This document shows, piece by piece, positions 1-64,000 of a stretch of 64,000 nucleotides of DNA; position 1 is the stretch's first letter, and each line of letters begins with the position of its first letter. The notes beneath the pieces are model-generated. The model was not told the DNA's origin, ran no database searches, and worked only from the letters and a program-made list of their open reading frames with translations. A program made the position numbers and the translations under genes. The DNA is taken from the sequence record PQ471516.1; one strand, written 5' to 3'.

Positions 1-1
1 G

Positions 2-913
2 TTCTTCAATGCTTACGAGAACCCATTCACTATGTTCAGTTCAGATACGACTTGTGAAGATATTTCGGTAGCGATGCCTAAACTTGACGGTTCAATCATC
101 AGTACATTTCGTGATAACGATGGTGAAATCCGTTGTAAATCACACACTTCCTTGTCATCTGACCATGCAATTAACAGTACTCGACTATTGAACGAGAACC
201 GTAATTTGTATGATTATGTAGACGAAGCAGACCGTTTGGGTTATACTGTGAATCTGGAGTATACAAGTCCAGAGTACCGAATAGTATTACCATATCAAGT
301 AGAACAATTATTTGTACTCAATGTTCGTCATCGTAAAAGTGGTGAGTTGTTATGCGGAGCAGCACTACGTAAGAAGTTCCCTTGTTTAGCACAATACAGT
401 ACTAATATGACGGGTAATAACATATGTTCATCATTTCCGGTGCGTTCTACCTTCAAAGAAAGTGTAGAAGAAGTCCGTAAAATGGTTGACATTGAGGGGT
501 TTGTGTGCATCCTAAATAATGGTACAATGTGTAAAATTAAAACGGATTGGTATTGCTCCTTGCATTTAACAAAGGATAGTATTATCATAGATTCCCATTT
601 ATATGAAGCTGTATTAAATGGTAGTAGTGATGACCTAAAGCAGTTGTTCAGTACTGATGCATATGCTATGCAGAAGATATTAAAAATGGAACAACATGTA
701 TTTGGATGCTATAATGCTTTACAAGATGAGGTAGAAAGCTTCGTCCAACAATACAAGCACTTGGAGCGAAAGGAATTCGCAATGAAGGTTCAGGAATGTC
801 TTAAGAATGAACTGAACCGTCAGGGCTTGGCCTTTGCGTTGTACAACGGTAAAGTGGTGAATTATAAAGAAACTTTATTGAAGTACTACAAAGATGTACT
901 AAAGGATTTTTAG
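2..913 (+). CDS. rnlA: RNA ligase 1 (T4 Rnl1-like), 5' end lies outside the window
   Basis: Frame is open from base 2 (FFNAYENPFTM, cf. T4 Rnl1 FFNLNENPFTM); adenylation motif KLDGSIIS, plus EGFV and KIKTDWY motifs. Confidence 0.9.
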   Translation, partial: FFNAYENPFTMFSSDTTCEDISVAMPKLDGSIISTFRDNDGEIRCKSHTSLSSDHAINSTRLLNENRNLYDYVDEADRLGYTVNLEYTSPEYRIVLPYQVEQLFVLNVRHRKSGELLCGAALRKKFPCLAQYSTNMTGNNICSSFPVRSTFKESVEEVRKMVDIEGFVCILNNGTMCKIKTDWYCSLHLTKDSIIIDSHLYEAVLNGSSDDLKQLFSTDAYAMQKILKMEQHVFGCYNALQDEVESFVQQYKHLERKEFAMKVQECLKNELNRQGLAFALYNGKVVNYKETLLKYYKDVLKDF

Positions 914-939
914 TACTAACTAGCCTAGCACAAGGAGAA

Positions 940-1197
940 GTGATGGCTAAACCTAAGTATAAAAATGACGGTTCCCTTTCTCCGACCGAGTTCAGGAAAA
1001 TACAACAAGATATCGATGAATTACAGCACAAACGCTCAAAGAAAGGTGTGAAGATTAGTAAGAAAAGAATCGAGAATACTTTTGGGTGTAGTAGTACTGA
1101 ATACAAGAAGAAGAGGAAACCAAAAGACGTGCAACCGAGAATACATGATGTGTCTCGACATACGTCTAAGCGTGAAAACAAATTCGATCCACTATAA
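940..1197 (+). CDS. small Lys/Arg-rich hypothetical protein
   Basis: ORF with SD AAGGAG before GTG start; very basic. Confidence 0.6.
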   Translation: MMAKPKYKNDGSLSPTEFRKIQQDIDELQHKRSKKGVKISKKRIENTFGCSSTEYKKKRKPKDVQPRIHDVSRHTSKRENKFDPL

Positions 1198-1206
1198 GGA
1201 GTTCAT

Positions 1207-1437
1207 ATGAAAGTTGAAGTTCAGCATAGTATTGTACAAGATATGTCCGTTGTGAAATTTCTATCATTGAAAGATTATTTCAGATGCATCAAGTTCCTAG
1301 AAGAATCGCAACTACAGTGGACACCGTTGAAGTACAGTTCATCCAATGATACAGCCAGTATTCGTTGTGATGAATCTGTACTTGTGAAAATCTCTAAGAG
1401 ATTTGGGGTAGGTAAAGTTAATGAGCACAGTAAGTGA
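1207..1437 (+). CDS. hypothetical protein
   Basis: ORF with SD AAGGAG. Confidence 0.6.
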   Translation: MKVEVQHSIVQDMSVVKFLSLKDYFRCIKFLEESQLQWTPLKYSSSNDTASIRCDESVLVKISKRFGVGKVNEHSK

Positions 1438-1675
1438 TCTAAAATACTACAACAAAACTGCGGAAACGTTTATTAATCATTTATATGATGAATTTAGTCG
1501 TATCCGCAAGGAATATACTGGTAAATGTATTTTATATTGTTCTTATCATAGTGGTGGAATTGAACGTGCTTACATTACTAAAGTAAAGTTTTCTGATGAC
1601 TATCAATTACTCTTTGAATTAGATAATTGTTTCGTTATTGAAGCTAGTTTGATAATGGATGTACTGGATAATTGA
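1421..1675 (+). CDS. hypothetical protein, helix + YxGKxV paralog family
   Basis: KEYTGKCI motif; packed in operon. Confidence 0.6.
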   Translation: MSTVSDLKYYNKTAETFINHLYDEFSRIRKEYTGKCILYCSYHSGGIERAYITKVKFSDDYQLLFELDNCFVIEASLIMDVLDN

Positions 1676-1681
1676 GGACAT

Positions 1682-1996
1682 ATGAATAAAGAACTTGCAC
1701 ATGAAGGTATCGAAAAGTTAAAGTACATTGAAAAGGAACTAATAGAATCCATTGAATCAATGGTCGAAGATTACGTTTTCGATTTTAAGAAAACATTGAT
1801 TGGATGTAAAGTTAAATGCTGGGATCATACTATCAGAGAATGGTTCAGTACTATTATTCTTGATGTTAAAGTATCTCGTACTGCTATTGGTAACTTAGTA
1901 AATGGTGAATGTTTTGTATACACTGAATACAATAACGGAACACGACACCTTTCAAAAGGATGGCACAGACTCGAAGATGTAGAATTCATCGAGTAA
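1682..1996 (+). CDS. hypothetical protein, YxGKxV-like family
   Basis: SD GAGGA; KTLIGCKV motif. Confidence 0.6.
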   Translation: MNKELAHEGIEKLKYIEKELIESIESMVEDYVFDFKKTLIGCKVKCWDHTIREWFSTIILDVKVSRTAIGNLVNGECFVYTEYNNGTRHLSKGWHRLEDVEFIE

Positions 1997-2008
1997 TAAG
2001 GAGTAATA

Positions 2009-2953
2009 ATGCCGACTATTACATTAACAGTTGGTCTGCCAGGATGTGGTAAAACTACATGGGCAGTTGAAGAAATTCGAAAAGCAAAGTTAAAGACTGT
2101 CAACATCAACCGTGATGACATTCGTGAGTCAATGGCTGGTTCACATGATGCATACAAATTCAACGACGCTAATGAGCAGTACGTAACTACATTACAGTTC
2201 AGTGCAGCAGATTTAGCAGCTAAGAATTCGTGGAACATCATCGTTTCTGACACGAACCTTAAACAAGGTTTTCGTGATAAATGGAAAATGTGGGCTTCAG
2301 ACAATGGTTACGACTACAAAGAAAAAGACTTCTATCAGGATTTTGAACCGAAAGAAGACCGTGGTGCTGATGTACATGAATTCTTTAAGATTAAAGAATA
2401 TGTAAAACTTTGTAAGACTCGTAACCTAAAACGCGAACGTTCAGTACAGGACAGTATCATTGATACTATGGCACATACGCACTATTACAGTAAAATGCGT
2501 ATGTTCAATGCGTATGAGCTTCAGAATTATGACTCATTACCGCATTGTATTATTGTTGATATTGATGGTACACTAGCTCATAAAGGGGGTCGTAACCCAT
2601 TCGATGAAAGTACTGTCCTACAGGATACCCCAGACGAGGAAGTAATTCTTTCTGTAATTGCAGAAGCACAGTTCTTTAAACGCAAGATTATCGTTATGTC
2701 CGGCAGGACTGAAGGGTGCAGAGAAGATACTGAGAAGTGGTTACTGACTTGGGGTGTGCCTTATGATGAACTATATATGCGAGCAATCGATGATAAACGT
2801 CCTGATGATGTAGTTAAGTACGAGCTACTATCTAAACACGTTGCTGGGAAGTACACAGTCAAGAAGGTTTATGATGACCGCGAGCAAGTAGTTTTTATGT
2901 GGCGTAACCTAGTAGGATTGAAAGTATTCCAAGTCGAACCTGGATTATTTTGA
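2009..2953 (+). CDS. pseT: polynucleotide 5'-kinase/3'-phosphatase (T4 PseT-like)
   Basis: N-terminal P-loop GLPGCGKT and NRDDIR; C-terminal HAD phosphatase DIDGT, SGR, R..DD.R.D, YDDR motifs. Confidence 0.93.
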   Translation: MPTITLTVGLPGCGKTTWAVEEIRKAKLKTVNINRDDIRESMAGSHDAYKFNDANEQYVTTLQFSAADLAAKNSWNIIVSDTNLKQGFRDKWKMWASDNGYDYKEKDFYQDFEPKEDRGADVHEFFKIKEYVKLCKTRNLKRERSVQDSIIDTMAHTHYYSKMRMFNAYELQNYDSLPHCIIVDIDGTLAHKGGRNPFDESTVLQDTPDEEVILSVIAEAQFFKRKIIVMSGRTEGCREDTEKWLLTWGVPYDELYMRAIDDKRPDDVVKYELLSKHVAGKYTVKKVYDDREQVVFMWRNLVGLKVFQVEPGLF

Positions 2954-2966
2954 TACAATAAAATAT

Positions 2967-2998
2967 ATGAGCGGATCATTTGATTCCGCTCATTTTTT
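2967..2998 (+). terminator. Rho-independent terminator
   Basis: ATGAGCGGA / TCCGCTCAT stem followed by T run. Confidence 0.8.
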
Positions 2999-3016
2999 AT
3001 CTAAGGATAAAGTACT

Positions 3017-3274
3017 ATGGATATGTTACAAGTGCAATTAAAACAAAGTACTGACTTGATCCTTTCTATTATTGAAGATCTAAATCAACAGTACTTAGGT
3101 AAACGTGTAATAACTCATACAAAGATTAAAGGATTTGTTTCGTTAATTTATTTTAATTCATATGAAAATAAACTATGCGTTCGAATTAGAACCATAGATG
3201 AAGAAACTGGGTATGAGGATGGTGGATTAGTATCTGTTCCTTTTCAAAATTTAAGGTTATTAGAAGATGATTAA
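3017..3274 (+). CDS. hypothetical protein, YxGKxV family
   Basis: QQYLGKRV motif; SD AAGGA. Confidence 0.6.
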   Translation: MDMLQVQLKQSTDLILSIIEDLNQQYLGKRVITHTKIKGFVSLIYFNSYENKLCVRIRTIDEETGYEDGGLVSVPFQNLRLLEDD

Positions 3275-3518
3275 AACAGAATTAGCATTAGTAAAACTGC
3301 ATGTAGACTACGCAACAGTACTCGTAGAAGATCTATCAAAAAAGTACGTTGGTAAACGTGTGCGTTGCTATTATAGTGAATATGATTATAAACATGATTT
3401 CCGTGTACAAGAGATTTTTCTGTTCGACGGAGTTATTAATATTCGTGTAATCAATGAACATAACCATACCTATACATATGGACTAAATGCTACTATAGAG
3501 GAATTACCAGATGAATAG
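3267..3518 (+). CDS. hypothetical protein, YxGKxV family
   Basis: KKYVGKRV motif; overlaps previous stop. Confidence 0.6.
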   Translation: MIKTELALVKLHVDYATVLVEDLSKKYVGKRVRCYYSEYDYKHDFRVQEIFLFDGVINIRVINEHNHTYTYGLNATIEELPDE

Positions 3519-3807
3519 TGTTTTGTCAAAATTAAAAGAATTGAATTTCTATACTTACCTGTGGCTTGCTGAACAAGAACAGTTTGTAAGCAGATCTTAT
3601 TCCCATATAATGATTGAGTTATCAAAGGATATACTAAAAACAGAAGTAAAAGTATTTTGTCCAGAAGCTAATATGAGTGGTAAGATTGTTGATTTTACTT
3701 TCGCTGGATTTATCAACTATAATTATGAACGTACACTGGGTATTAAGGTTGAAATTGGGGAAGACGACTATTGTACCTTTCAGTTGCCAGATTTGGTGAT
3801 ACAATGA
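3511..3807 (+). CDS. hypothetical protein
   Basis: ORF in tight operon, SD GAGGA. Confidence 0.55.
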   Translation: MNSVLSKLKELNFYTYLWLAEQEQFVSRSYSHIMIELSKDILKTEVKVFCPEANMSGKIVDFTFAGFINYNYERTLGIKVEIGEDDYCTFQLPDLVIQ

Positions 3808-4103
3808 ATGAGGAAGATTTAAGAATATTAACCCTCTATAGCAATCATTCGATAATTTTATATGAGATGGTTTATGAATACAAATACAGCGAGTATCCTT
3901 TATTTGATTTAGTACTGGATTTTTATAACGAAGTACGTGACAAATATTACGGTAAACCCATTGTAATATTAGATGATACATTTTATATAGCAGCAGTGTA
4001 TGGTTCATTAAATGGTATATTCTTTGATTTGAAATCGGATCTTAAATCAAAACATTTTGATGATAGTTTGTATATTTCGGAGATACCAAAATGTCGAATT
4101 TAA
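3804..4103 (+). CDS. hypothetical protein, YxGKxV family
   Basis: ATG at 3804 overlapping previous stop (ATGA) preferred to 3771; DKYYGKPI motif. Confidence 0.55.
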   Translation: MNEEDLRILTLYSNHSIILYEMVYEYKYSEYPLFDLVLDFYNEVRDKYYGKPIVILDDTFYIAAVYGSLNGIFFDLKSDLKSKHFDDSLYISEIPKCRI

Positions 4104-4417
4104 CAGAAGAAGATTTAAAGTATCTTCTGTACGTAGAAAAATCTACCATATTAATTTCGTCGGTTTGTGAAGAGTTTGACGATACCATGTGGAAAGGATG
4201 TGTACCAACATATATTTTTAACACTATGGAAATATTGGAAAATAAGTTCTATAATAAATTAGTATATGAAAAGGAATATCCTAAAGTCAAACTTTATATT
4301 AAAGAATGCTTTTTCGCTGGACGCAATGGTTTTATGTTTGACACAGGACGAAACGAAAAAGAAAAGTACACCTTCACTAGTGTTTATCTTGATGAGATTT
4401 TGTTAGCAAAAGATTGA
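4091..4417 (+). CDS. hypothetical protein
   Basis: SD GGAG; N-terminus NLTEEDLKYL resembles that of the preceding ORF (NEEDLRIL). Confidence 0.55.
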   Translation: MSNLTEEDLKYLLYVEKSTILISSVCEEFDDTMWKGCVPTYIFNTMEILENKFYNKLVYEKEYPKVKLYIKECFFAGRNGFMFDTGRNEKEKYTFTSVYLDEILLAKD

Positions 4418-4442
4418 CATTGAACTGGAATTGAACTATAAT
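4414..4442 (+). promoter_or_regulatory. sigma70-type promoter
   Basis: Perfect TTGACA-N17-TATAAT. Confidence 0.75.
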
Positions 4443-4755
4443 GGACGAAATATTAAAAGAAATAGTACAATGGGAAAAGGACTTTGTTTTCATCAGTGAA
4501 CAAAGAAACAATGCACCAAAGAGTGTTCGATGTGCCATTGAGTACTACATTGATGAAATATGTGAATACCTGACTAAAAAGTACTGTCCATTTAGTTCAG
4601 GATATTCCACCAACAGTTTTGTAACCAAACGAGATGCAGATGAAATTCATATTGTAAAACGTATTACCCCAGGGTTTGGAAACTGGTTTGTATTCAACAC
4701 TGAACAACATGAATACCTATACATCGAAGATTTAAGAAATATTATCAAAATATAA
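4441..4755 (+). CDS. hypothetical protein
   Basis: 104 aa ORF in operon. Confidence 0.55.
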   Translation: MDEILKEIVQWEKDFVFISEQRNNAPKSVRCAIEYYIDEICEYLTKKYCPFSSGYSTNSFVTKRDADEIHIVKRITPGFGNWFVFNTEQHEYLYIEDLRNIIKI

Positions 4756-4766
4756 GGAGAGTACAT

Positions 4767-5378
4767 ATGTTAACAACACTAGCAATTATTTGGGTTCTTG
4801 GTGTAATCATCACTGCTATGCTTGCATACAATCACAACCGCAGTATCATTGGGTATTCTGTACTCGGTGTAGTACTGTCACCTGTGATTTCAATCGGTGC
4901 TTTGCTTTTTCTAGGTGAACGCAACCCTAATCTATTCATCAATGATAACCGTGATAAGGTTACTCCAGAACCAGAAACTGTTCTTCCTGAAGAACTAGAA
5001 CCTGCACCTGAAGTTGTTGAAATAGTTGAAGAAGTCGTGGAACCTGTCAAACCAGTACCGCCAGTATTCCCTGAAGTACAGGTTGTTCCTGAAGTTAAAA
5101 AGCCTAAGTCCAATAAGTCTTCAAAGAAAGCACGATATACTAAAGGCAAGAACAAAGGCAAGAAACCAGATACCCAAAGCACTACCACTACTTCCACAAC
5201 TGCCCCTGATAACGCATCAGGCATCGCTACAGCAGCCGTAATGACCGCCCTGTACGTTGGTGACGATTACAGCGATTACACCACTACAACGACGTATAGC
5301 TCGTCCTCTGATAGTTCTTCATATGACAGTTCCAGTTCATGTGATAGCAGCAGTTCTTCTTCAGGTAGCTGTGATTAA
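4767..5378 (+). CDS. membrane protein with Pro/Glu/Val linker and Ser/Thr/Asp-rich tail
   Basis: Two N-terminal hydrophobic helices; low-complexity C-terminus; SD AAGGAG. Confidence 0.7.
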   Translation: MLTTLAIIWVLGVIITAMLAYNHNRSIIGYSVLGVVLSPVISIGALLFLGERNPNLFINDNRDKVTPEPETVLPEELEPAPEVVEIVEEVVEPVKPVPPVFPEVQVVPEVKKPKSNKSSKKARYTKGKNKGKKPDTQSTTTTSTTAPDNASGIATAAVMTALYVGDDYSDYTTTTTYSSSSDSSSYDSSSSCDSSSSSSGSCD

Positions 5379-5379
5379 T

Positions 5380-5742
5380 ATGAAAGACCTGAAATACGTT
5401 TCAATGTATTACGATGTACTCACTAATCAATTCTTGGAATACATCGATTCTGTCAGAACGGATCTTACGGGTAAAACCGTAGGATTCACCGAAGAATATA
5501 TTGAAAAACAGAACAGGATTGAATCTTATACCTTCATCGATGACGATGGTACAATTTTTGAAGGTGATGATGAAATTACACGCATCAGTACTGATATTAA
5601 GATGGAAGTCATTACTATAGTTAACAAGAATACAAAACTATACGCTGTAGTTGAATGTCTATCATGTCCAGATGACACTATATATGATTTTGACCAATAC
5701 ATAGATCTTAAAAATTTAGTACTGCTAGGAGTGGAGGAATAA
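5380..5742 (+). CDS. hypothetical protein, YxGKxV family
   Basis: ATG at 5380 directly after previous stop preferred to 5257; TDLTGKTV motif. Confidence 0.55.
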   Translation: MKDLKYVSMYYDVLTNQFLEYIDSVRTDLTGKTVGFTEEYIEKQNRIESYTFIDDDGTIFEGDDEITRISTDIKMEVITIVNKNTKLYAVVECLSCPDDTIYDFDQYIDLKNLVLLGVEE

Positions 5743-5744
5743 GC

Positions 5745-5969
5745 ATGTTAGGTTTATTTGGAATTTATGGTTTTGTTGCAGTAACATCTTTTATTTGCAA
5801 TTTGGTAGTACTTTCATTTGGTAAAACAGGCGAGGAAGACTTTGACAGTCGCCTTAAAACTGCTGCACTAATGGCAATACTTTGGCCTGTTACTTTGGTG
5901 TACCTAGGAAACTCATTGGTACAGGACGCTATCGAGAAGTACATTAAGAAATCTAAAAAGGGAGAGTAA
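5745..5969 (+). CDS. small two-helix membrane protein
   Basis: Hydrophobic segments, AILWPVTL; SD GGAGG. Confidence 0.6.
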   Translation: MLGLFGIYGFVAVTSFICNLVVLSFGKTGEEDFDSRLKTAALMAILWPVTLVYLGNSLVQDAIEKYIKKSKKGE

Positions 5970-5970
5970 T

Positions 5971-6174
5971 ATGTGGGCTGTTTTTGGGATTTATATTTTG
6001 GTAGTACTGGCAGTATTTGTTTATAACTTCTTCACTAATTACGGTACACAAACACTAAGCATTACTGAGGTTGCAGGTGATTCGGTAGTTTCCGCTATCA
6101 TGTGGCCTGTGAATCTTTTTGTGCAGATTCTATGTATTGTTCCAGGGTTAACCAAGGATATAAAACATGACTAA
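5971..6174 (+). CDS. small two-helix membrane protein, paralog of 5745-5969
   Basis: M.xxFGIY start and AIMWPVNL shared with neighbour. Confidence 0.6.
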   Translation: MWAVFGIYILVVLAVFVYNFFTNYGTQTLSITEVAGDSVVSAIMWPVNLFVQILCIVPGLTKDIKHD

Positions 6175-6424
6175 TATAGATAAATCTCATATTCGTTATT
6201 TGTTTTCTTTAGTTGATGATTTTGTACAAGATATCAAGCCCAAGTACATTGGGAAAGAAGTACGTTTGACACATACCAGAGGTTACCATAAACATATCAT
6301 TGAAGATGTTATTCTTCGTAAGGGTGAGTTGTGCTTTAAAGTTTGCAATTACCTTGATGATGGTACGTTTGCTGGTTCTCAAATGGTACATGATGATAAG
6401 ATTATTTGGTGGGATATTGAATGA
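6167..6424 (+). CDS. hypothetical protein, YxGKxV family
   Basis: PKYIGKEV motif; SD AAGGA. Confidence 0.6.
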   Translation: MTNIDKSHIRYLFSLVDDFVQDIKPKYIGKEVRLTHTRGYHKHIIEDVILRKGELCFKVCNYLDDGTFAGSQMVHDDKIIWWDIE

Positions 6425-7164
6425 AACATTTCTTAGAAGTAACTGTTCCAGATGATAAAGAACTATATATTGTGGGCGACATTCATGGTAATGCAAAACT
6501 ATGGGATATAACTAAAACAGAATTTGGCATTACTTCTGATGATTATGTTTTTAGCTTAGGTGATCTAATCGACCGAGGAACTCAAAGTGCTAAGTTACTT
6601 TTTGAGTTCCTTTTTGCCGATAACCGTTTCATGATTATCGGCAATCATGAACAACTATGTGTTGATTCTGAAAAGTACAGAGACTGGCATCACTGCTGGT
6701 TAATGAATGGTGGAGATAAGTTCATCGAGGAAATCGGTGATACTGGTATTCAGTTCTTTCGACAGTACTTAAATCAGTTACCATCAATCATCCAAATCAA
6801 CCACAGAGGTCTGAAGATTGGACTCGTTCATGCTGGTGTTGAACTGAAGTACCAGGACTGGGATCAGTTTATTTCTGGAACAAAATCGCTTAGTACTGAT
6901 ATAATTGAGTCATTGCTATGGGAACGTAAGACATTTGATTACTGCAAAGGAAACAATGTATATAATGCACCACGCATTCAGGGTGTTGACTACGTTCTTA
7001 GTGGTCATACTGGTGTGGTTGACCCATTGATTTATGGCAATCGCGTATGGATAGACAGTCAATTCATGAGTGGTGATTTAACCGTTGCCACCCCACAAAG
7101 TGGCAAGATGCGTTACTTGCGTCGAGAAAAGGACGATTATTCTTTTAATCGTTTTAAAAGGTAA
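6421..7164 (+). CDS. Ser/Thr protein phosphatase (lambda NinI/PrpA-like metallophosphoesterase)
   Basis: GDIHG, GDLIDRG, GNHE, HAG, GHT motifs. Confidence 0.9.
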   Translation: MKHFLEVTVPDDKELYIVGDIHGNAKLWDITKTEFGITSDDYVFSLGDLIDRGTQSAKLLFEFLFADNRFMIIGNHEQLCVDSEKYRDWHHCWLMNGGDKFIEEIGDTGIQFFRQYLNQLPSIIQINHRGLKIGLVHAGVELKYQDWDQFISGTKSLSTDIIESLLWERKTFDYCKGNNVYNAPRIQGVDYVLSGHTGVVDPLIYGNRVWIDSQFMSGDLTVATPQSGKMRYLRREKDDYSFNRFKR

Positions 7165-7167
7165 ATT

Positions 7168-7440
7168 ATGCACGAAGAGATACAACAATACCTAACTAAA
7201 CGCAACAATTTTGAAAGTATGATTTCATCGATAATTCAAGATTATCGAAATGAAGTTCATGCGTATCTATCTGACAAAATTGTTGGGAAACAAGTAATGT
7301 TTCAGTTAGAAGATGGCATTAATCCAGCAGGTATTCTAACGCGTATCGTCACTATGTCATATAATACTATCTACGTAGAAATCGAGTACAGTGGTAATAG
7401 ATTATATCAAACGGATATTAAGTACGTTACGTTTTTATAA
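7168..7440 (+). CDS. hypothetical protein, YxGKxV family
   Basis: DKIVGKQV motif. Confidence 0.55.
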   Translation: MHEEIQQYLTKRNNFESMISSIIQDYRNEVHAYLSDKIVGKQVMFQLEDGINPAGILTRIVTMSYNTIYVEIEYSGNRLYQTDIKYVTFL

Positions 7441-7450
7441 GGAAATAAAA

Positions 7451-7678
7451 ATGAAAGAAATTCTGGTACAAGTAAAGAAATATCAAACTGAAGATGGTAA
7501 GATTTTTGATTCAGCCCGTGAAGCAGAACACCATGAACGTATCATTGGCGGGGTAAGAAAGACATGTCCACATTGTAATGGTACACAGCAAGTTCCTGAT
7601 GAAGAATTTCGTCGTTTCTATGCATGTCCAACATGTGATGGTCGCGGGTGGGTAGAAAAACAAGAGGTATGGAAATGA
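7451..7678 (+). CDS. small zinc-finger protein (DnaJ-type CxxCxGxG repeats)
   Basis: CPHCNGTQ ... CPTCDGRG; SD AAGGA before ATG 7451. Confidence 0.65.
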   Translation: MKEILVQVKKYQTEDGKIFDSAREAEHHERIIGGVRKTCPHCNGTQQVPDEEFRRFYACPTCDGRGWVEKQEVWK

Positions 7679-8088
7679 AATTATATTGCTTAACAAATAT
7701 GTACTGTCAGGGTACACAAGGTGGAATACAGGCATTTCACGCTGGTGTACGACTAATCAAAGAGTATGAAGGTTCACACTTCAGTACTATGATTGATGAG
7801 TGGTACTATGACCATGAAACGGTTGTAGTACTGAATGCTGGATCTCACTCTTCCCTTGAGAAATACATGCAAGACTTAAAACAGCAAGGGCAGGTTCCAT
7901 ATGCTGAGTTCAAAGAGTACGGCTTAAATGATGCACTAACTAGTATTGCAGTACTATGCACAACTGAAATGGTTGAAGACATGTCCGTACTGCGTATGAA
8001 TCTACCTGCGGGTGATCAGCTAATGGAAGTTAAATATGGCAAGCTATATCCAGTACTGAAAGCTATTAGTACCATGAGGACATTGTAA
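7675..8088 (+). CDS. peptidyl-tRNA hydrolase II (PTH2)-like protein
   Basis: Q..HA, W....E.VVVL, E..L....T.IAV pattern of the PTH2 fold; ATG at 7675 overlapping previous stop. Confidence 0.55.
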   Translation: MKLYCLTNMYCQGTQGGIQAFHAGVRLIKEYEGSHFSTMIDEWYYDHETVVVLNAGSHSSLEKYMQDLKQQGQVPYAEFKEYGLNDALTSIAVLCTTEMVEDMSVLRMNLPAGDQLMEVKYGKLYPVLKAISTMRTL

Positions 8089-9296
8089 TGAAGTTTCCTG
8101 AACAACTCTATGTAGCAAGAAAATATGTATCATCCGAGCGTGTAGAAGCAATGGTAACTGATGCTACAAAAACACACACGAAAGCATTCGAAACTAAAAA
8201 AGAACGACTGGATAGTTGGGCTAGTAGAGCAGGTAGCAAAGAACTACCATCTATATTCATCGAAAACAAACCAACTATTGGTTTTAGTATTGTAAAAATG
8301 GTTTATTCCTACAACCGCGACACTTTCTTCACAGTTCGACACCCTGAAGGTTTTGAGTTCTATATTCCTGCAAGCAATATGAATGATCTTATTGCCAACA
8401 ATGATATCATTAAAGGTGTTTTCCAAGCCCCATTGTACTTCAATGACAAAATGGAACTAATCAATGAAAGTACTTCATTATTTGAAAAAATGAAAAAAGA
8501 GGAAGAGAAACAAAGTGAACGTAAAGATTTTGTACAAACTCTTAAAGTAGGTGATGGATTTACTTACAAAGATAATGACTATTATTATTGTGGTCGTGTT
8601 CACGCACTTTGTATGATGAAGTCAAAAGAATATAGTATTCCAGAAAAGAGTTCTCTGTATCATTTAGTTTATAATATTAGTAAGCAGCATTATGTACTGA
8701 ACACTAAACTGGATAAGTACACCTTAGCTCCTAAAGCATTACTTAATGCCAAAACTACAATTGATAAAGAAATTACCAAAGCAAATGCTGAAATATATGA
8801 ATCAAAAGATAAATTGAGTGATTATTTGAGTGATAGTCTCAAACCTATCGTTATGTCAGAGAAACCATTCAAGAAGACTAGTTTAAAAATCCGTTATGAG
8901 AAAATTGATGTAAAAGATATTTTCAACCAGACTAAACGCTTCAATAGTGATTTGATTTACAAAGTACACAAAGATGGTCAAGACTATCGCGTGTTTGTTG
9001 GGTTAAAGGCTACTGCGTATGATCGCTATTCATATAACAGAAATGATTACAGTTTGATTTATTACGGTGAATTTGATGTATTTGCTGGCACTGAAGTTGA
9101 TATTGATGAAAATGGTATCATGACATTAGATGTTGACCTAGATAAACATACATCATTCGGTTCATGGAATGGTTATCAATCTCCGTTCTATCCACCTACT
9201 AAAAAATATTCATCATCTAACAGTTATGCTGACAGAAAACAAATGGCACATCTATCAACTGACCTTGAATTGTTTGTAAGCCATTACTACCTGTAA
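8088..9296 (+). CDS. hypothetical protein (402 aa)
   Basis: Long ORF, no recognised motif. Confidence 0.75.
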   Translation: MKFPEQLYVARKYVSSERVEAMVTDATKTHTKAFETKKERLDSWASRAGSKELPSIFIENKPTIGFSIVKMVYSYNRDTFFTVRHPEGFEFYIPASNMNDLIANNDIIKGVFQAPLYFNDKMELINESTSLFEKMKKEEEKQSERKDFVQTLKVGDGFTYKDNDYYYCGRVHALCMMKSKEYSIPEKSSLYHLVYNISKQHYVLNTKLDKYTLAPKALLNAKTTIDKEITKANAEIYESKDKLSDYLSDSLKPIVMSEKPFKKTSLKIRYEKIDVKDIFNQTKRFNSDLIYKVHKDGQDYRVFVGLKATAYDRYSYNRNDYSLIYYGEFDVFAGTEVDIDENGIMTLDVDLDKHTSFGSWNGYQSPFYPPTKKYSSSNSYADRKQMAHLSTDLELFVSHYYL

Positions 9297-9324
9297 ACGG
9301 AATTTATATAAAAAGGATTTTACA

Positions 9325-13181: not shown

Positions 13182-13466
13182 ATGACAAAAGTACTCGTTC
13201 GTAATAACAGTACTGAAGAAGTTCAAGTACTCGATGATTCAGAATTCATTGATGTAGCACTAACTCAAATGTCCGAAGCTGCATTGTCAGTTAAAGGATG
13301 CACACAGTCTGAAGAACTGCTTAATGGTTTAGCTGTAGTTCTTGAACTAATGCAAGAAGTACTTGCAAAAAATAACATCAATCCAATTAACGTCGTGACA
13401 CATGCAACCAATCTACGTAATGAGTTTGGTTCATTCAGTGACAAAAAAGCATCCACTAAAGAATAA
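13182..13466 (+). CDS. hypothetical protein
   Basis: SD GAGGT. Confidence 0.65.
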   Translation: MTKVLVRNNSTEEVQVLDDSEFIDVALTQMSEAALSVKGCTQSEELLNGLAVVLELMQEVLAKNNINPINVVTHATNLRNEFGSFSDKKASTKE

Positions 13467-46729: not shown

Positions 46730-46730
46730 T

Positions 46731-46760
46731 TTGGGAAATACTCCAGAAAAGTGCTATAAT
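46731..46760 (+). promoter_or_regulatory. extended -10 promoter driving the non-coding unit
   Basis: TTGGGA-N18-TATAAT with TG-C-TATAAT extended -10. Confidence 0.6.
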
Positions 46761-46765
46761 GTATA

Positions 46766-47288
46766 GTGAAAATGACAATGGGCGGTGTAAGCCGGATAAC
46801 GAGAACCTAATTCTCTTGAAAATGTAAAGGATAGATGAGCTTTACCATTGTAGCGAAGTGCAGAAGAAACCCGTTAGAGTACTAGCAGCCATTCAAACAA
46901 GGCATAAGAACTACGAATCACGGCAATGCGGCACTATAAAGAACTCCGACAGCATAACAGAGAGTTCCTAGATAGACATATAAGGATCGCACCTTACCAG
47001 ATTTGCTAAGGGAGTTTAACTCAATAAATGCGGTCGCAATTTTTCACAAGAAAGTTGCGTCCAAATTTTGAGTAAACAAGTACTACTTTGGTCGAATAGA
47101 GTTAGTACTTTGTGCTGGGGATGAAAAGACCAGTGACCGTTGCATATGACTGCGATAGAGAGAAACAGAGCAACCCGCTTTCGTTCTCTTAAATTAGACG
47201 AGAAAGATCCGTCTAAAATTTGAGAAATTCGCAATTCGACAATTCCGATGCCATCAGCGTCAAGAAGAGACTTAATTGTCTCTTTTTT
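46766..47288 (+). ncRNA. candidate large structured non-coding RNA (~520 nt), family unassigned
   Basis: No + strand ORF of 60 aa or more; promoter upstream and terminator downstream; about 12 hand-identified helices including a multi-way junction and a GUAA tetraloop. Confidence 0.6.
47265..47288 (+). terminator. Rho-independent terminator
   Basis: AAGAGAC-TTAATT-GTCTCTT TTTT. Confidence 0.8.
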
Positions 47289-47293
47289 ATTAC

Positions 47294-47429
47294 TTTCATT
47301 CCCCTGCGGGGGGATGAAATGTCCTCAACAAATCCCGTCAAGCTTTTAAAGTACAATATAAAGGAATGAATGAGTTTACGAAGTAAACGATATGAATTCT
47401 TGAGTTACGAAGGAACGAAGTGAATGAGT
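47294..47429. repeat. GC-rich hairpin followed by short direct repeats
   Basis: 11 bp stem 47294-47319; GAGT(T)TACGAAG at 47372 and 47402; GAATGAGT at 47368 and 47422. Confidence 0.5.
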
Positions 47430-55296: not shown

Positions 55297-55297
55297 T

Positions 55298-55608: not shown

Positions 55609-55617
55609 GGAAACATT

Positions 55618-56730
55618 ATGAAAAAATATCTCGTGGGTGGATTCGTCCGCGACCGACTACTGGGCTTACGTGCTAAAGACAAAGATTATGTCATTGTCAG
55701 TGCGTCTGAATCTGATATTAAGTACTTGAAAAGTATTGGGTACAAACAAGTCGGTATTGATTTCCCTGTATTCTTGAGTCCAGAGGGAAATGAATATGCA
55801 TTAGCCAGGACTGAACGTAAAGTCGGTGTAGGCTACAATGGCTTTGAAGTTAATACTAAAGGTGTAACCTTAGAAGAAGACTTATATCGCCGTGACCTCA
55901 CCATCAATGCTATTGCATACGATCCAGTACTGCAAATTCACATCGACCCATACGGTGGGAAAGATGATATTAAGAATAAAGTACTGCGTCACGTTTCAGA
56001 GCATTTCAAAGAAGACCCATTACGTGTTCTTCGTCTTGCACGCTTTGCAACACGATATAATGACTTTACAATTCACGAAAGTACTGTTACAATGTGCACT
56101 GAAATGGTTAGTACTGGTGAGTTGAATCATCTTGTACCAGACCGTGTGTATGTTGAATTTGAAAAAGCATTCTCTGAAGAGAAACCTGCCAAGTTCCTGA
56201 AAACACTGGCTAATTTCGGCTATTATGAAAAAGCATTTACTAAAACACTAACCCGTAAGGTATTAGAATTGGTTGATAATATTTCAGATAATTGTACAGA
56301 AGCATATAAGCCATATTTCATTTGGAGTGCACTTCTCGAAACAGAAGAAGTAAATAAAGACTCAGTACTGAACGAATCAATTAAAATGCCCGTTAAGTAC
56401 GTGAAGTTTAGCAATTATGTAAAACGATTCCGTGATGATATCAAGACATTCCGTAAGAAAACACCTGAAGAGATGGGTGCGTTGTTACTGGAAATGAACA
56501 TTCGAAATAACGGTGGGGAAGAATTCCTGTACAAAGTGCTGGAGTACTTTATTCTTCGTCGTGAAATCGACCTTGAACTTGAAGATTTGATTATTAAGGT
56601 GTATGATCGTTACACCGATACTGTATTACCTGATATTGAAGAAATGGTTAAAGACGGTTCTCTGGACAAGAAAGATATTCGTGACTTTGTACAAGGTTTG
56701 CGTATTACTGAAATCCAGAAAATGTTCTGA
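55618..56730 (+). CDS. cca: tRNA nucleotidyltransferase (CCA-adding enzyme, class II)
   Basis: YLVGGFVRD.LLG....DKDY, EYALARTE.K, EDL.RRDLTINA, EDPLR.LR.ARF. Confidence 0.93.
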   Translation: MKKYLVGGFVRDRLLGLRAKDKDYVIVSASESDIKYLKSIGYKQVGIDFPVFLSPEGNEYALARTERKVGVGYNGFEVNTKGVTLEEDLYRRDLTINAIAYDPVLQIHIDPYGGKDDIKNKVLRHVSEHFKEDPLRVLRLARFATRYNDFTIHESTVTMCTEMVSTGELNHLVPDRVYVEFEKAFSEEKPAKFLKTLANFGYYEKAFTKTLTRKVLELVDNISDNCTEAYKPYFIWSALLETEEVNKDSVLNESIKMPVKYVKFSNYVKRFRDDIKTFRKKTPEEMGALLLEMNIRNNGGEEFLYKVLEYFILRREIDLELEDLIIKVYDRYTDTVLPDIEEMVKDGSLDKKDIRDFVQGLRITEIQKMF

Positions 56731-56736
56731 AATCAT

Positions 56737-56764
56737 TGGACAAATCTTCAAGTACTGATATAAT
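56737..56764 (+). promoter_or_regulatory. sigma70-type promoter
   Basis: TGGACA-N16-TATAAT with extended TG. Confidence 0.7.
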
Positions 56765-56806
56765 TAATGGTATCTGAACATCATATGATGAAAACGAGAT
56801 AAGATT

Positions 56807-60113: not shown

Positions 60114-60115
60114 TA

Positions 60116-61141: not shown

Positions 61142-61147
61142 TAAATA
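61142..61147 (+). promoter_or_regulatory. putative T4-like late promoter (TAAATA)
   Basis: AATAAATA about 50 nt upstream of sheath gene. Confidence 0.45.
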
Positions 61148-61197
61148 AGACTATACGAATATATTTCGAATAACCAATTATTTTTGGAGGATTTAAT

Positions 61198-63861
61198 ATG
61201 GCAGGAGATCTACTCTCACCTGGCGTTTCCGTAACAGTAACTGATGAAAGTATGAGTACTGCGTCTGCTCCTGGTACAGTCCCACTATTCATTATCGCAA
61301 CTGCGGAAGACAAACTAGTACCTGGTAGCAGTGCAATCGCTGCTGGTACAACGAAAGCAAATGCTGGTAAACTACAGCTTTTAACATCACAAAAAAGTTC
61401 TTTGGACACCTATGGTACTCCAATTTTCCAAATGAGCAATGGTTCAGTTGTTCAAGGTGACGAACTTAACGAATATGGCCTACATGCAGTGTATTCCTAT
61501 CTTGGAATTACTAATCGTGCATACGTAGTGCGTGCTGACATTGACTTAGCTCAACTAGCACCATCTGCAACTGCACCAACTGGCCCAGTATCTAATGGCA
61601 CTCTATGGCTTGATGTTGCTCAATCACAAGTTGAAGCATATGTAGCACGTAAAGACAGCCCAAGCAGTTTCTATGATTGGGAACTAAAAACCGTAACTAT
61701 CGTATCTTCTGAAGAAGTTGCTGACGTTAGTACTATCGGTATGAATGTAAATGATCTAGTACTACGCTATAAGCCAAGTAACGGTCAGATGCTAATGTAC
61801 AAATTTACTGCTTCTGGTTTGGTACAGATGGAAACTTATCTATCACCAATCAATAAAGTTCCAGTAGGCAGTACTATTGAACAAGGCAATATCTGGATTC
61901 GTGATGGCTATACTCAAAATGGTTCTAACTATTTCGGTACTCGCTTTGTAATTAAACGTTACGCTTCCCTAACTCAAGTTTGGAATACCGTTGCAGCTTA
62001 TACTGGTAACTCTTTCCAAGAAATCGAAGCTAAAAGCGGTGCTCTAAGTAGTGCATTTATCGCAGTTCGTTTTGACGATGATAGTAAGAGTTTCTCTTTC
62101 TACATTCAAAGTGCTAAACTTTCTGTAATTAGTGCTCCAGCAATGCCACTAGGCGAAACTGTTATTGAACAGGCTGGTGAAGACAGCTATTTAACTTTCC
62201 AATTCCTAAATCAAACTGTTAAAGTACTAGCAGTACCGCAAGGTAATGTTATTAATACTCAAACAATCGTTGATAACGTGAATAAAAGTGCTGATCTAAT
62301 TAACAATGGCTTTAAATTTAAACGTGAATCTAATGGTGGTTTCGTAGTTACTAACGTTAAAGGTTATAGTTTCAAAATTACCCAAAGTGGTGATGATATT
62401 TTTGATGCAACTGAAATCAAAAAACTAACTGTTGACAGTAACAACTACTCTCTAATCAACGTTAACAACTTCCGTGTTGATTCTTCTGTGCCACGTAGTA
62501 CTGCTAAAGAAGGTACTCTATGGTATGATTTCGGTAACTCTGACAACCTAACCGTTACTATGTACATCGCTGATGTAGCTAATGACGAATGGGACGTAGT
62601 TCAAGAAGACAACAAATACGTTCAACTAGACGAACCTGCTGCTGACCGTTTGATTTGGGTATCTCCTAAATCTCAAGGTATCGATGGTTATGACTTCTAT
62701 CGTAACGTAAATGGTGAGTGGGTTAAACTAGACCAAACTGACCAAAGTACTCTAAACGGTATGATCTTCGAAGATTTCAACTTCCCTGAACAAGTACCTG
62801 CTGCTGCTCTATATCAGAATGGTATGCTCGCAATCGACCTAGGCAATACCGAAGGTGTTGTTAAGAAAATGGTTAATGGTCAATGGCAAGTAGTTAGTGG
62901 TGTTGGTATTGATGGTAATGGTCTATTTGGTCGTTCTGCACAACGTCAACTAATCGTTGAAGCACTAGCTGCTGTTGTTGTTGGTAACGATGATATCCGT
63001 TCCGAATTTATCGACTTTAACCTAATCTGTGTTCCTGGTTATGTTGAACTACTAGATGAGTGTGTTACTCTAAACACTGACCGTAAAGAAACTGCTTTCA
63101 TCGTAACTGATGTTCCAGCACGTTTGAACCCAACTGGTAACGGTAGTGAAGTTCAAGAATGGGCTACTAACGCTAACAACGCACCAAGCAACGGTTCTGT
63201 AGGTCGTACTACTGCTTATGATTATGCTGCTCAGTATATGGGCTGGGGTCTAAGTACTAACGTTGATGGTGAAGAAGTTGCAGTTCCTGGTAGTACTATT
63301 GCAATGCGTACCTATGCGTACAGTGATAGTGTTAGCTACGTTTGGTATCCACCTGCTGGTACTACTCGTGGTGTGGTAACTAACGCTTCATCTATTGGCT
63401 TTATTAACGACGAAGGTGAATATCAACCAGTTGTTTATAACCAAGGTCAACGTGATGTAATGTATACCAACAACATCAACCCAATTGCAATGCGTCCTAA
63501 CCGTGGTTTGCTAGTTTATGGAGATAAAACTCTATCTGCTAACCAAACTTCAGCACTAAGCCGTGTTAACGTTGCTCGTTTAGTTGTTTATATTCGTCGT
63601 CAACTAGAAATCATTTCTGAACCATTCCTATTCCGTTTGAATACTCCAAGTACTCGTCAGGAATTCGCTGGTGTAGTGAATAGTTTCCTAGCAGAAATCG
63701 TTCAACAACAAGGTCTATATAACTTCGCAGTAGTTTGTGACGAAAGTAACAACACTTCCGAGCGTATTGACCGTAACGAACTCTGGATGGATATCGCAAT
63801 TCAACCAACTAAGAGTATCAACTTCATTTACGTACCAATTCGTATTGAAAAAACTCAATAA
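61198..63861 (+). CDS. contractile tail sheath protein (T4 gp18-like)
   Basis: LSPGV.V...D.S N-terminus; C-terminal SR.NV.RL..YI, N....R..F...V, VVCDESNNT...IDRNE...DI.I.PTKSINFI. Confidence 0.93.
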   Translation: MAGDLLSPGVSVTVTDESMSTASAPGTVPLFIIATAEDKLVPGSSAIAAGTTKANAGKLQLLTSQKSSLDTYGTPIFQMSNGSVVQGDELNEYGLHAVYSYLGITNRAYVVRADIDLAQLAPSATAPTGPVSNGTLWLDVAQSQVEAYVARKDSPSSFYDWELKTVTIVSSEEVADVSTIGMNVNDLVLRYKPSNGQMLMYKFTASGLVQMETYLSPINKVPVGSTIEQGNIWIRDGYTQNGSNYFGTRFVIKRYASLTQVWNTVAAYTGNSFQEIEAKSGALSSAFIAVRFDDDSKSFSFYIQSAKLSVISAPAMPLGETVIEQAGEDSYLTFQFLNQTVKVLAVPQGNVINTQTIVDNVNKSADLINNGFKFKRESNGGFVVTNVKGYSFKITQSGDDIFDATEIKKLTVDSNNYSLINVNNFRVDSSVPRSTAKEGTLWYDFGNSDNLTVTMYIADVANDEWDVVQEDNKYVQLDEPAADRLIWVSPKSQGIDGYDFYRNVNGEWVKLDQTDQSTLNGMIFEDFNFPEQVPAAALYQNGMLAIDLGNTEGVVKKMVNGQWQVVSGVGIDGNGLFGRSAQRQLIVEALAAVVVGNDDIRSEFIDFNLICVPGYVELLDECVTLNTDRKETAFIVTDVPARLNPTGNGSEVQEWATNANNAPSNGSVGRTTAYDYAAQYMGWGLSTNVDGEEVAVPGSTIAMRTYAYSDSVSYVWYPPAGTTRGVVTNASSIGFINDEGEYQPVVYNQGQRDVMYTNNINPIAMRPNRGLLVYGDKTLSANQTSALSRVNVARLVVYIRRQLEIISEPFLFRLNTPSTRQEFAGVVNSFLAEIVQQQGLYNFAVVCDESNNTSERIDRNELWMDIAIQPTKSINFIYVPIRIEKTQ

Positions 63862-63870
63862 TAAAACATT

Positions 63871-63897
63871 AAGGGAGCCGTTTGGCTCCCTTTTTTT
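63871..63897 (+). terminator. Rho-independent terminator
   Basis: AAGGGAGCC-GTTT-GGCTCCC T7. Confidence 0.85.
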
Positions 63898-64000
63898 ATT
63901 GTAAAAATTAAATACAATACAATATTATTATATGGGTAATTATATGGAAGAAATATTAAAGTCGATATTACAAGAACTTAGCTCCCATGTATCAACTCAA

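Follow-up and report, generated by a model that had tools for sequence, protein, structure and literature searches.

The window analyzed here is a stretch of 64,000 nucleotides (sequence record PQ471516.1) from the 351,311-bp genome of Escherichia phage Turkey5, a jumbo myovirus of the 121Q/RaK2 group, and nearly all of its genes lie on one strand. Across this window, 193 copies of the palindrome AGTACT are dispersed at 3.0 per kb, and the whole genome holds 1001, or about one per 350 bases. The gene at 13182..13466 (+) is the densest in the window, with four sites in 285 bp (13190, 13209, 13226, and 13358). The 694-bp non-coding gap at 46730..47423, which had been proposed as an ncRNA candidate, contains three sites (46878, 47079, and 47104), and neither an Rfam family nor a tRNA was found there. 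At 56725..56765 (+), upstream of the NUDIX gene at 56841, a site is embedded in a promoter-like sequence, TTGGAC-N17-TATAAT, where AGTACTG fills the 3' end of the spacer and supplies the extended -10 TG, an architecture that recurs in the early region of the genome. The tail sheath gene at 61198..63861 (+) carries 10 sites, among them those at 63253 and 63292 (63253..63297) and that at 63649..63654, and was used to test deep positional conservation.

The over-representation of AGTACT claimed in the earlier note is confirmed by our counts. Exactly 31 sites lie in bases 1-10000, at the positions counted by hand in that note, and exactly 20 lie in 30898-36940, where it gave about 20. Independent bases predict 21.7 sites in the window, and dinucleotide shuffles give 20.6±5.0 with a maximum of 36, so the roughly 9-fold enrichment stated in the note is correct (8.9-fold), whereas Markov models of order 2, 3, and 4 give 40, 75, and 158, respectively. 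AGTACT is the commonest of all 4096 hexamers. The disappearance of the excess under a codon- and dinucleotide-aware null model had been named beforehand as a possible refutation, but against 181 sites observed in coding sequences, a synonymous-codon shuffle within genes gave 49.6±6.2 (z=21), a codon-order shuffle gave 27.6, and 3-periodic Markov models of order 1, 2, 3, and 4 gave 19, 41, 71, and 145. All three codon phases are used (84/28/69), each at 3.4-4.3 times the level of the synonymous shuffle. Non-coding DNA holds 11 sites in 4062 bp against 0.98 expected (P=8e-9), and the density is 2.95/kb there and 3.02/kb in coding DNA. The excess even distorts the proteome, because Ser-Thr occurs 131 times against 85 expected, with 64% of cases encoded by AGTACT, and Val-Leu occurs 165 times against 115. 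The sites are spread evenly, at 9-16 per 4 kb, with Poisson-like spacing (CV 1.06) and no periodicity, and their density depends neither on gene class within the window nor on how conserved the gene is (Spearman -0.03). They are not copies of a dispersed, REP- or MITE-like repeat, given that the best flank identity to any other site has a median of 0.50 against 0.47 for random positions, and the window contains no N.

These observations bear on the possibility that the cause lies at the level of RNA or translation, for example AGUACU as an RNase site or a self-pairing RNA element, or a preference for particular codon pairs or dipeptides. The one-strand arrangement of the genes, the existence of a strand-specific ACU-free block elsewhere in the genome, and the presence of phage tRNA-Ser(GCU) and tRNA-Thr(UGU) might be taken in its favor. 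However, the equal density in non-coding DNA, including positions upstream of -35 elements, the enrichment in all three codon phases over synonymous shuffles, the symmetric flanks (C at -1 in 40% and G at +1 in 50% of sites on the + strand), and the occurrence of the motif in genes on the minus strand already largely refute this explanation, which we consider very unlikely.

The motif is graded rather than strict. C at -1 and G at +1 are found in 45% of sites against a background of 18%, and G at -1 is disfavored in all relatives. AGTACT is 8.4-9.3 times over the order-0/1 expectation, while CAGTACTG occurs 214 times against 5.8 expected (37-fold) and TTCAGTACTGAA 15 times against 0.06 (about 250-fold). 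AGTACT is the core of a 12-bp palindrome, TTC-AGTACT-GAA, and such graded flanks fit protein-DNA binding energy better than a strict type II site.

The selected unit is the half-site (C)AGTAC, which is independently enriched. In a 4.4-kb block where ACT is banned on the sense strand, AGTACT is replaced by AGTACA in all three codon phases; there, + strand AGTAC occurs 33 times against 5.0 expected and CAGTAC 13 times against 1.1, while GTACT is absent. The total half-site density in the block (7.5/kb) about equals that of the genome (8.7/kb) regardless of orientation, which favors an orientation-blind reader of duplex DNA, although the argument rests on this one block. An alternative is that (C)AGTAC is read on unwound DNA, either as an unusually long primase start site or as a Chi-like stop/load signal for a helicase-nuclease, and that the palindrome is simply the cheapest way to place the word on both strands. 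The enrichment of the half-site, the uniform, Poisson-like density of the sites independent of gene class and gene conservation, the 48-fold rarity of the motif in host DNA, and the T4-type recombination-dependent replication genes of the phage (a primase, a DnaB-like helicase, UvsX/UvsY, gp46/47-like proteins, a Dda-like and a UvsW-like helicase, and a PD-(D/E)XK nuclease) are compatible with this idea. A strand-specific need does not, however, predict that the half-site doubles on one strand of the ACT-free block rather than staying at the per-strand level, known primases use trinucleotides, no RecBCD- or AddAB-type enzyme was seen among the helicases and nucleases checked, and the fixed promoter positions described below would be left unexplained. 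We thus regard a single-strand signal as unlikely.

The trait is shared by every enterobacterial relative sampled. AGTACT is enriched in 121Q (82 vs 12.5 expected), EJP2 (143 vs 16), Muenster (103 vs 10), CBB (51 vs 6), Munch (42 vs 6.7), and XbC2 (52 vs 7), and RaK2, fHe-Yen9-04, Serratia BF, and a GAP32-sized contig have early regions at 6-7.7 sites per kb. It is not enriched in PA5oct (1 vs 7.8), CM1 (2 vs 6), phi92 (0 vs 8), or JSF5 (2 vs 8). Density is highest in the early region (about 6-7/kb), but this figure does not separate the effect of the larger share of intergenic, promoter-bearing DNA there. Host DNA is about 48-fold poorer in the motif, with three sites in 50 kb of K-12 DNA, so the motif could serve as a self mark.

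The confinement of the enrichment to phages of Enterobacterales, whereas the non-enriched relatives infect Pseudomonas and Stenotrophomonas, also raises the possibility that the phage captures the host nucleoid-occlusion factor SlmA, to block cell division or to titrate SlmA. The SlmA-binding site of E. coli, GTGAGTACTCAC, is a palindrome bound by a dimeric helix-turn-helix protein and has an identical central AGTACT (PMC3020112). SlmA, however, needs G, T, A, and G at positions 1, 2, 4, and 5 and a purine at position 3, and the flanks (GT at positions 1-2 and a purine at position 3) are not enriched in the phage, which prefers TTC. The genome contains no copy of GTGAGTACTCAC and only two matches to GT.AGTACT.AC among its 1001 sites, about the chance number, C is preferred and G disfavored at position 3, and GAGTACTC is the rarest flank class. 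The host, moreover, has about 50 SlmA sites against 1001 AGTACT in the phage. The possibility seems remote.

Individual sites are conserved far beyond matched controls. Of 144 sites, 68 are conserved in 121Q against 37.0±5.0 for gene- and phase-matched hexamers (z=6.2), and of 135 sites, 126 are conserved in JNE01 against 111.6±3.9. Third-codon-position identity is 0.765 inside sites and 0.600 outside. In the sheath gene, 12 alignment columns carry the site in two or more of seven relatives at about 70% amino-acid identity, while random placement gives 1.07 columns (maximum 7). The site at 63649..63654 (column 2574) is present in all seven clade members sampled (Turkey5, 121Q, EJP2, Muenster, CBB, Munch, and XbC2), which represent seven genera, and those at 63253 and 63292 (columns 2178 and 2217) are each shared by five of the seven; the PA5oct sheath gene has no site. 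Such positional conservation indicates purifying selection, but it can also arise from a restoring mutational bias, in which a very-short-patch-like or biased gene-conversion process would convert near-cognate sequences to AGTACT with no benefit from any individual site. Klebsiella phage Muenster encodes a protein whose record annotation cites an HHpred match to Vsr (1CW0), and a 4.9-kb lineage-specific block shows that composition can differ by region. On the other hand, single-mismatch neighbors are not depleted: the observed/expected ratio of AGTATT/AATACT is 1.25, and the other neighbors are at 1.2-2.4 except for AGTCCT/AGGACT at 0.6, which is not a deamination product. The Muenster Vsr-like protein has no homolog in Turkey5, the C5 methyltransferase of the phage is probably CpG-specific, and gains and losses between Turkey5 and JNE01 look balanced. 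A 9- to 37-fold excess accompanied by amino-acid changes such as Ser-Ser to Ser-Thr also far exceeds the VSP effect known in E. coli. A mutational or repair drive is therefore improbable.

About 5% of the sites sit at fixed positions in sigma70-type early promoters, in the forms AAAGTACTTGCA-N15-19-TATAAT and TTGACA-N9-12-AGTACTG-N-ATAAT, with pairs 20 bp apart. This holds for about 40-50 sites in the early region and for a few in the window, such as that at 56751, but not for the remaining sites, about 95%, which are intragenic, and paralogous promoters are not independent observations. The first form is conserved in 121Q, CBB, fHe-Yen9-04, Serratia BF, and others.

The abundance of AGTACT stands against an extreme avoidance of other palindromes, since GCGC is absent from the genome against about 237 expected and 25 of the 64 six-base palindromes are also absent. 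Keeping 1001 ScaI-type sites in such a genome implies a benefit and some form of protection. No ScaI-like endonuclease is annotated, but two orphan methyltransferases are conserved through the clade. The annotated C5 methyltransferase is DNMT3-like and probably targets CpG, and RaK2 DNA was reported to be CpG-methylated (PMC3622015), so it is probably not the reader of AGTACT. The other, a Dam-family PF05869 enzyme at genome positions 55185-55712 that is annotated only as hypothetical, belongs to a clade-specific lineage, with at least 60% identity within the clade and about 40% for the nearest outsider, and remains a candidate. AGTACT, or its GTAC/AGTAC core, might thus be the target of this enzyme, and the methylated palindrome would serve repair, recombination, or self/non-self marking, as proposed for GCGATCGC in cyanobacteria. 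The reported resistance of RaK2 DNA to methylation-sensitive enzymes (PMC3622015) and the same statistical behavior of the cyanobacterial palindrome, which is tied to two orphan methyltransferases (PMC4390886, PMC5861425), agree with this view. Characterized members of the Dam family, however, act on GATC or nonspecifically, flanks graded out to ±3 are unusual for a type II methyltransferase site, and methylation alone does not explain why more sites would be better. In addition, both methyltransferase families occur outside the clade without enrichment, and homologs in phi92, JSF5, and Sazerac go with avoidance of AGTACT. A purely methylation-based mark is possible but doubtful.

The earlier note had inferred that AGTACT is a recognition or modification site of a phage-encoded system, and listed self/non-self marking by methylation, genome organization or packaging, recombination, and protection from a phage nuclease without choosing among them; this interpretation is only partly supported. 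A DNA-level signal that is not due to amino-acid or codon preference, specific to the clade and far denser than in host DNA, agrees with it, but no reader was identified, and no methyltransferase, nuclease, or binding protein was tied to the motif by any test here. The graded palindrome, the orientation-blind compensation of half-sites, and the fixed promoter positions narrow the choice modestly in favor of a reader of double-stranded DNA, although the Poisson-like spacing and flat density fit a requirement for density and do not single out binding. Our tentative reading, which is the most likely of those considered, is that selection maintains the motif across the whole genome of the enterobacterial 121Q/RaK2/CBB-type jumbo phages as the recognition site of a phage-encoded, sequence-specific DNA-binding protein, a dimer on the palindrome, possibly coupled to methylation. 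Such a protein would occupy phage DNA about once every 350 bp and mark it as distinct from host DNA, and at early promoters, where the motif sits just 5' of the -35 and -10 elements, the site would double as an operator. What the analysis itself establishes is the enrichment, its independence from coding, its restriction to the clade, purifying selection on individual sites, selection on the half-site, and the fixed promoter positions. That the reader is a protein acting on duplex DNA, what it does once bound, whether marking, protection, organization, or early-promoter control, and that the sites are shielded from ScaI-type restriction by that protein or by the Dam-family methyltransferase are inferences.

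[quoted passage not shown] HIP1 is also a short palindrome hyper-abundant genome-wide, at up to about one per 350 nt, present in coding DNA in all frames and in non-coding DNA, maintained by selection and conserved between relatives, restricted to a lineage, and accompanied by orphan methyltransferases, with its function still unsettled (PMC4390886, PMC5861425). AGTACT shows the roughly ten-fold over-representation, the independence from codon usage, and the conservation between relatives that characterize HIP1, but it is an analog and not a member, because the A+T-rich sequence is different (CGATCG does not occur in the genome) and it resides in a virus rather than a cell. It also differs in its soft flanks and independently selected 5-6-nt half-site, in the placement of part of its sites at fixed promoter positions, in its lack of periodicity, and in that no methyltransferase has been shown to recognize it. 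Chi, KOPS, and DNA uptake sequences are likewise short words enriched well above chance because a DNA-processing machine, that is, RecBCD, FtsK, or the uptake machinery, reads them, and can distinguish self from foreign DNA, but they are asymmetric and strand-polarized, whereas AGTACT is a palindrome without polarity, several-fold denser, and without a known reader; it is not a Chi-like signal in this sense. Finally, AGTACT is itself a type IIP recognition sequence (ScaI, AGT^ACT), and the genome shows textbook restriction-site avoidance of the 25 other hexamer palindromes and of GCGC, but for AGTACT the sign is reversed to an 8-9-fold enrichment, while the unrelated phages phi92, PA5oct, JSF5, and Sazerac do avoid it.

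The window corresponds to bases 62001-126000 of the 351,311-bp genome of Escherichia phage Turkey5 (PQ471516.1; 100% identity), a jumbo myovirus of the 121Q/PBECO4/RaK2 group whose closest relative is JNE01 (about 97% identity), while 121Q-type phages are about 77-82% identical at the DNA level. The window contains no N, and almost all of its genes lie on the + strand. AGTACT was found 193 times in this region, and the over-representation described in the earlier note is real: its hand counts of 31 sites in bases 1-10000 and 20 in 30898-36940 are exact. In contrast, 21.7 sites are expected from independent bases, 20.6±5.0 from dinucleotide shuffles (maximum 36), and 40, 75, and 158 under Markov models of order 2, 3, and 4, respectively. 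AGTACT is the single most frequent hexamer, and the next two, CAGTAC and GTACTG, are its extensions.

Codon-aware controls did not remove the excess, although its disappearance under a codon- and dinucleotide-aware null model had been named in the earlier note as one outcome that would refute it. Against the 181 sites located in CDS, the shuffling of synonymous codons within genes gave 49.6±6.2 (z=21), the shuffling of codon order gave 27.6, and codon-phase-specific Markov chains of order 1-4 gave 19, 41, 71, and 145. All three codon phases are enriched (84/28/69 against 25/7/16), and 64% of Ser-Thr dipeptides are written as AGTACT, against 16% expected from codon usage. The dipeptides themselves are in excess (Ser-Thr, 131 vs 85; Val-Leu, 165 vs 115), and therefore the DNA motif is shaping the proteins. 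Non-coding DNA has the same density (2.95 vs 3.02 per kb), with 11 sites against 0.98 expected (P=8e-9). These results rule out a codon, dipeptide, or dinucleotide artifact, and an origin at the level of RNA or translation is considered very unlikely. The flanks of different sites are no more alike than random positions, so the sites do not constitute a repeat family.

The flanks of the motif are symmetric and graded: C at -1 and G at +1 occur in 45% of sites against 18% in the background, and T is favored at -2 and -3. In the whole genome, AGTACT occurs 1001 times, CAGTACTG 214 times against 5.8 expected, TCAGTACTGA 41 times against 0.57, and TTCAGTACTGAA 15 times against 0.06. The 5-mer AGTAC is enriched on its own (3.9x), and AGTACA, AGTACC, and AGTACG are each 1.8-2.4x over expectation. 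The spacing of the sites is Poisson-like (CV 1.06). Within the window, gene conservation does not explain the local density (Spearman -0.03), and genes with no 121Q counterpart have 2.8 sites per kb. Across the genome, however, density peaks at 5.6-7.1 per kb in the early small-gene region (340-351 kb and 0-20 kb) and falls to 1.2-2.5 per kb in the late structural region.

The same genome shows extreme avoidance of palindromes. GCGC occurs 0 times against about 237 expected, 25 of the 64 hexamer palindromes are entirely absent, including GGTACC and CGTACG, which share the GTAC core, and GATC is halved. AGTACT is thus kept against a strong general purge. DNA of the host K-12 has only 3 sites in 50 kb, which is about 48-fold fewer per kb.

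The enrichment is shared by every enterobacterial member sampled: the observed and expected numbers are 82 vs 12.5 in 121Q, 143 vs 16 in EJP2, 103 vs 10 in Klebsiella phage Muenster, 51 vs 6 in Pectobacterium phage CBB, 42 vs 6.7 in Salmonella phage Munch, and 52 vs 7 in XbC2. The early regions of RaK2, fHe-Yen9-04, Serratia BF, a GAP32-sized contig, and several 355-371-kb metagenomic contigs are at 3-7.7 per kb, all with GCGC = 0. The absence of GCGC is shared by all clade members sampled but not by PA5oct. AGTACT enrichment is lacking, and the site is in fact depleted, in the more distant PA5oct (1 vs 7.8) and Stenotrophomonas phage CM1 (2 vs 6), as well as in the unrelated phi92 (0 vs 8), JSF5 (2 vs 8), and Sazerac (1 vs 6.5). 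G at -1 is disfavored in all clade members, while the preferred flank shifts from C in the Asteriusvirus and Alcyoneusvirus phages toward A in Munch and CBB. A non-exhaustive scan of IMG/VR for three clustered sites returned clade-type contigs with dispersed sites (one is RaK2 itself; the others share GC ~0.36 and GCGC = 0), and its other hits were tandem coding repeats.

Individual sites are under selection. Of 144 Turkey5 sites alignable to 121Q, 68 are still AGTACT, whereas hexamers matched for gene and codon phase give 37.0±5.0 (z=6.2), and the corresponding figures for JNE01 are 126/135 against 111.6±3.9. Identity to 121Q at third codon positions is 0.765 inside the sites and 0.600 outside. 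In the tail sheath gene, 12 alignment columns carry the site in two or more of seven relatives at about 70% amino-acid identity, while random placement gives 1.07 columns (maximum 7). The site at window position 63649 is present in all seven relatives, those at 63253 and 63292 are present in five, and the PA5oct sheath gene has none. About half the sites nevertheless turn over between Turkey5 and 121Q, often through amino-acid changes such as AGTTCT to AGTACT. The gains and losses between Turkey5 and JNE01 were too few to show polarity, and they look balanced. One possibility is that a repair process of the VSP type drives near-cognate sequences toward AGTACT. This is considered quite unlikely, because one-mismatch neighbors are not depleted and no Vsr-like enzyme is present in Turkey5. 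A 667-aa protein of Klebsiella phage Muenster (positions 17248-19251 of L012, the Muenster locus), whose record annotation cites an HHpred match to Vsr (1CW0), has no homolog in Turkey5.

In the early region, the motif sits at fixed places in sigma70-type promoters. It is found immediately 5' of a TTGCAA -35 element (AAAAAGTACTTGCAA) and/or at the 3' end of the spacer, where AGTACTG supplies the extended -10 TG (…AGTACTGTATAAT), and the two copies are 20 bp apart. The early promoters in positions 1-20000 of L003, a locus of Turkey5, and in the related loci L143-L219 follow a conserved design composed of an A-tract, AGTACT, TTGCAA, N15-19, and TATAAT, often with a second AGTACTG just 5' of the -10 element, and this design is shared across genera of the clade. 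The first form recurs in 121Q, CBB, fHe-Yen9-04, Serratia BF, and others, and one clear example lies in the window at 56751, but these sites account for only about 5% of the total. The phage sigma factor (genome 303905-304867; 27905-28867 in locus L007 of Turkey5) matches sigma70 regions 2 and 3 but not region 4, which would suit extended -10 promoters such as AGTACTGTATAAT. A ParE-like toxin gene (PF24732) is also encoded in L003 (15164-15418 and 15420-15717 are the positions concerned), and it is followed by two promoters with an unusual TTGAC-AGTACT-N10-AGTACT layout, placed in front of a 72-aa "transcriptional regulator" and the gene after it.

A protein tied to the motif did not emerge from the candidates considered. 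Turkey5 encodes a 286-aa C5 methyltransferase (PF00145; genome 276796-277656, L007:796-1656), which is annotated as "DNMT2" but whose best matches among solved structures are the DNMT3A/B catalytic domains, over its full length. This agrees with the CpG methylation reported for RaK2 by bisulfite sequencing in a paper that also reports two methyltransferases (PMC3622015), and the enzyme is therefore probably not AGTACT-specific. A homology search of 5.8 billion proteins gave no information on its specificity. The JNE01 copy matches only residues 78-286 and appears as two places, so it may be disrupted. A second gene, annotated as "hypothetical protein" (genome 55185-55712; 5185-5712 in locus L008 of Turkey5), belongs to the Dam family of N6-adenine DNA methyltransferases (PF05869, E=2.7e-33, NPPY motif). 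Its lineage is specific to the clade, and no solved structure matches it. Homologs of either family outside the clade go with avoidance of AGTACT, as seen in phi92, JSF5, and Sazerac, and the presence of a methyltransferase family therefore does not predict enrichment. A methylation mark like that proposed for HIP1 remains possible but is considered unlikely on present evidence. Pfam gave no DNA-binding family for either the small early "transcriptional regulator" or the phage "Dps." The site of the host protein SlmA shares the AGTACT core, but the flanks that SlmA requires are not enriched, with 0 full sites and 2 matches to the relaxed form among 1001, and capture of SlmA by the phage is thus very improbable.

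An informative exception lies outside the window, at genome 26032-30434 (L003), where the sense strand has no ACT trinucleotide for 4402 nt. This gap is 94 times the mean spacing, while the next largest gap for any trinucleotide is 24 times its mean. The block is composed of about 10 small paralogous genes sharing an E-x-FQYSTL motif and is found only in Turkey5 and JNE01. AGT, the complement of ACT, is abundant, and the Thr codons there are ACT 0 and ACA 39. The homologous block of JNE01 (positions 2967-7414 of its locus L252) is also ACT-free despite about 5% divergence, although random substitutions with the observed spectrum would already have created about 5 ACT in half of the block (P(0)=0.002). 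In this block AGTACT is replaced by AGTACA in all three codon phases: on the + strand, AGTAC occurs 33 times against 5.0 expected, CAGTAC 13 times against 1.1, and GTACT 0 times. The total density of half-sites is 7.5 per kb, against 8.7 per kb genome-wide. These results show that the half-site (C)AGTAC is itself selected and that, when one orientation is forbidden, the other compensates. Such compensation is predicted by an orientation-blind reader of duplex DNA and not by a strand-specific one, and a single-strand signal for a primase or a helicase-nuclease is accordingly a doubtful alternative, though not an excluded one. As for the ban on ACT, one idea is that the transcripts of the block may be immune to an ACU-specific RNase; the known E. 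coli enzymes cut ACA (MazF) and UAC (ChpB) (PMC8546651).

The analysis establishes a DNA-level, clade-specific palindrome that is selected site by site, with soft symmetric flanks, an independently selected half-site, and fixed promoter positions, in a setting of general palindrome purging. These features are best explained, albeit tentatively, by a phage-encoded sequence-specific protein acting on duplex DNA and possibly coupled to methylation. The existence of such a protein, its binding to AGTACT, any methylation of the site, and what the protein does once bound are inferred. The proposal of the earlier note that AGTACT is a recognition or modification site of a phage-encoded system is thus supported in part. 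The high density in the first-expressed region and the need to shield 1001 ScaI-type sites suggest a protective or marking role that begins early, while the promoter positions suggest shut-off of early transcription. A bolder possibility, which we hold with less confidence, is that the 121Q/RaK2/CBB clade runs a so far undescribed genome-tagging system, in which a dedicated phage protein would read (C)AGTAC about 1000 times per genome, would identify phage DNA against host DNA for protection, organization, replication, or recombination, and would switch off early promoters. Such a system would be the first viral counterpart of genome words of the HIP1, Chi, or uptake-sequence type and would have co-evolved with the extreme purge of other palindromes.

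Full-text searches found no description of AGTACT or ScaI-site enrichment in these or any other phages, and the genome papers on CBB, RaK2, and Sharanji do not mention it. The closest known phenomenon is HIP1 of cyanobacteria (PMC4390886, PMC5861425), and we regard the present motif as a variation on it with a different sequence and as the first one in a virus. Phage genomes are expected to lose restriction-type palindromes, and the complete loss of GCGC and 25 hexamer palindromes in a clade, together with the build-up and conservation of about 1000 copies of one palindrome, breaks that rule, pointing to an unknown protein-DNA system in a poorly understood group of therapeutic-candidate jumbo phages. 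The motif reshapes protein sequences, marks clade membership in metagenomes, and gives a direct experimental handle, since an oligonucleotide probe could be used to fish out the reader. It may also throw light on the 30-year-old HIP1 problem by providing a second, independent, and genetically tractable example.

The 694-bp non-coding gap at 46730-47423 of the window, which the earlier note had proposed as an ncRNA candidate, lies upstream of a DUF5856 gene annotated as DpsA, and Rfam and tRNA scans of the window found nothing there or elsewhere in it. Outside the window, the phage tRNA set (L007:10480-15754; genome about 286-292 kb) includes Ser(GCU), Ser(UGA), two Thr(UGU), Leu(UAA), Gly(UCC), and Asn(GUU). 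Ser(GCU) and Ser(UGA) match the two commonest Ser codons, AGT (33%) and TCA (26%), of which AGT is inflated by the motif.
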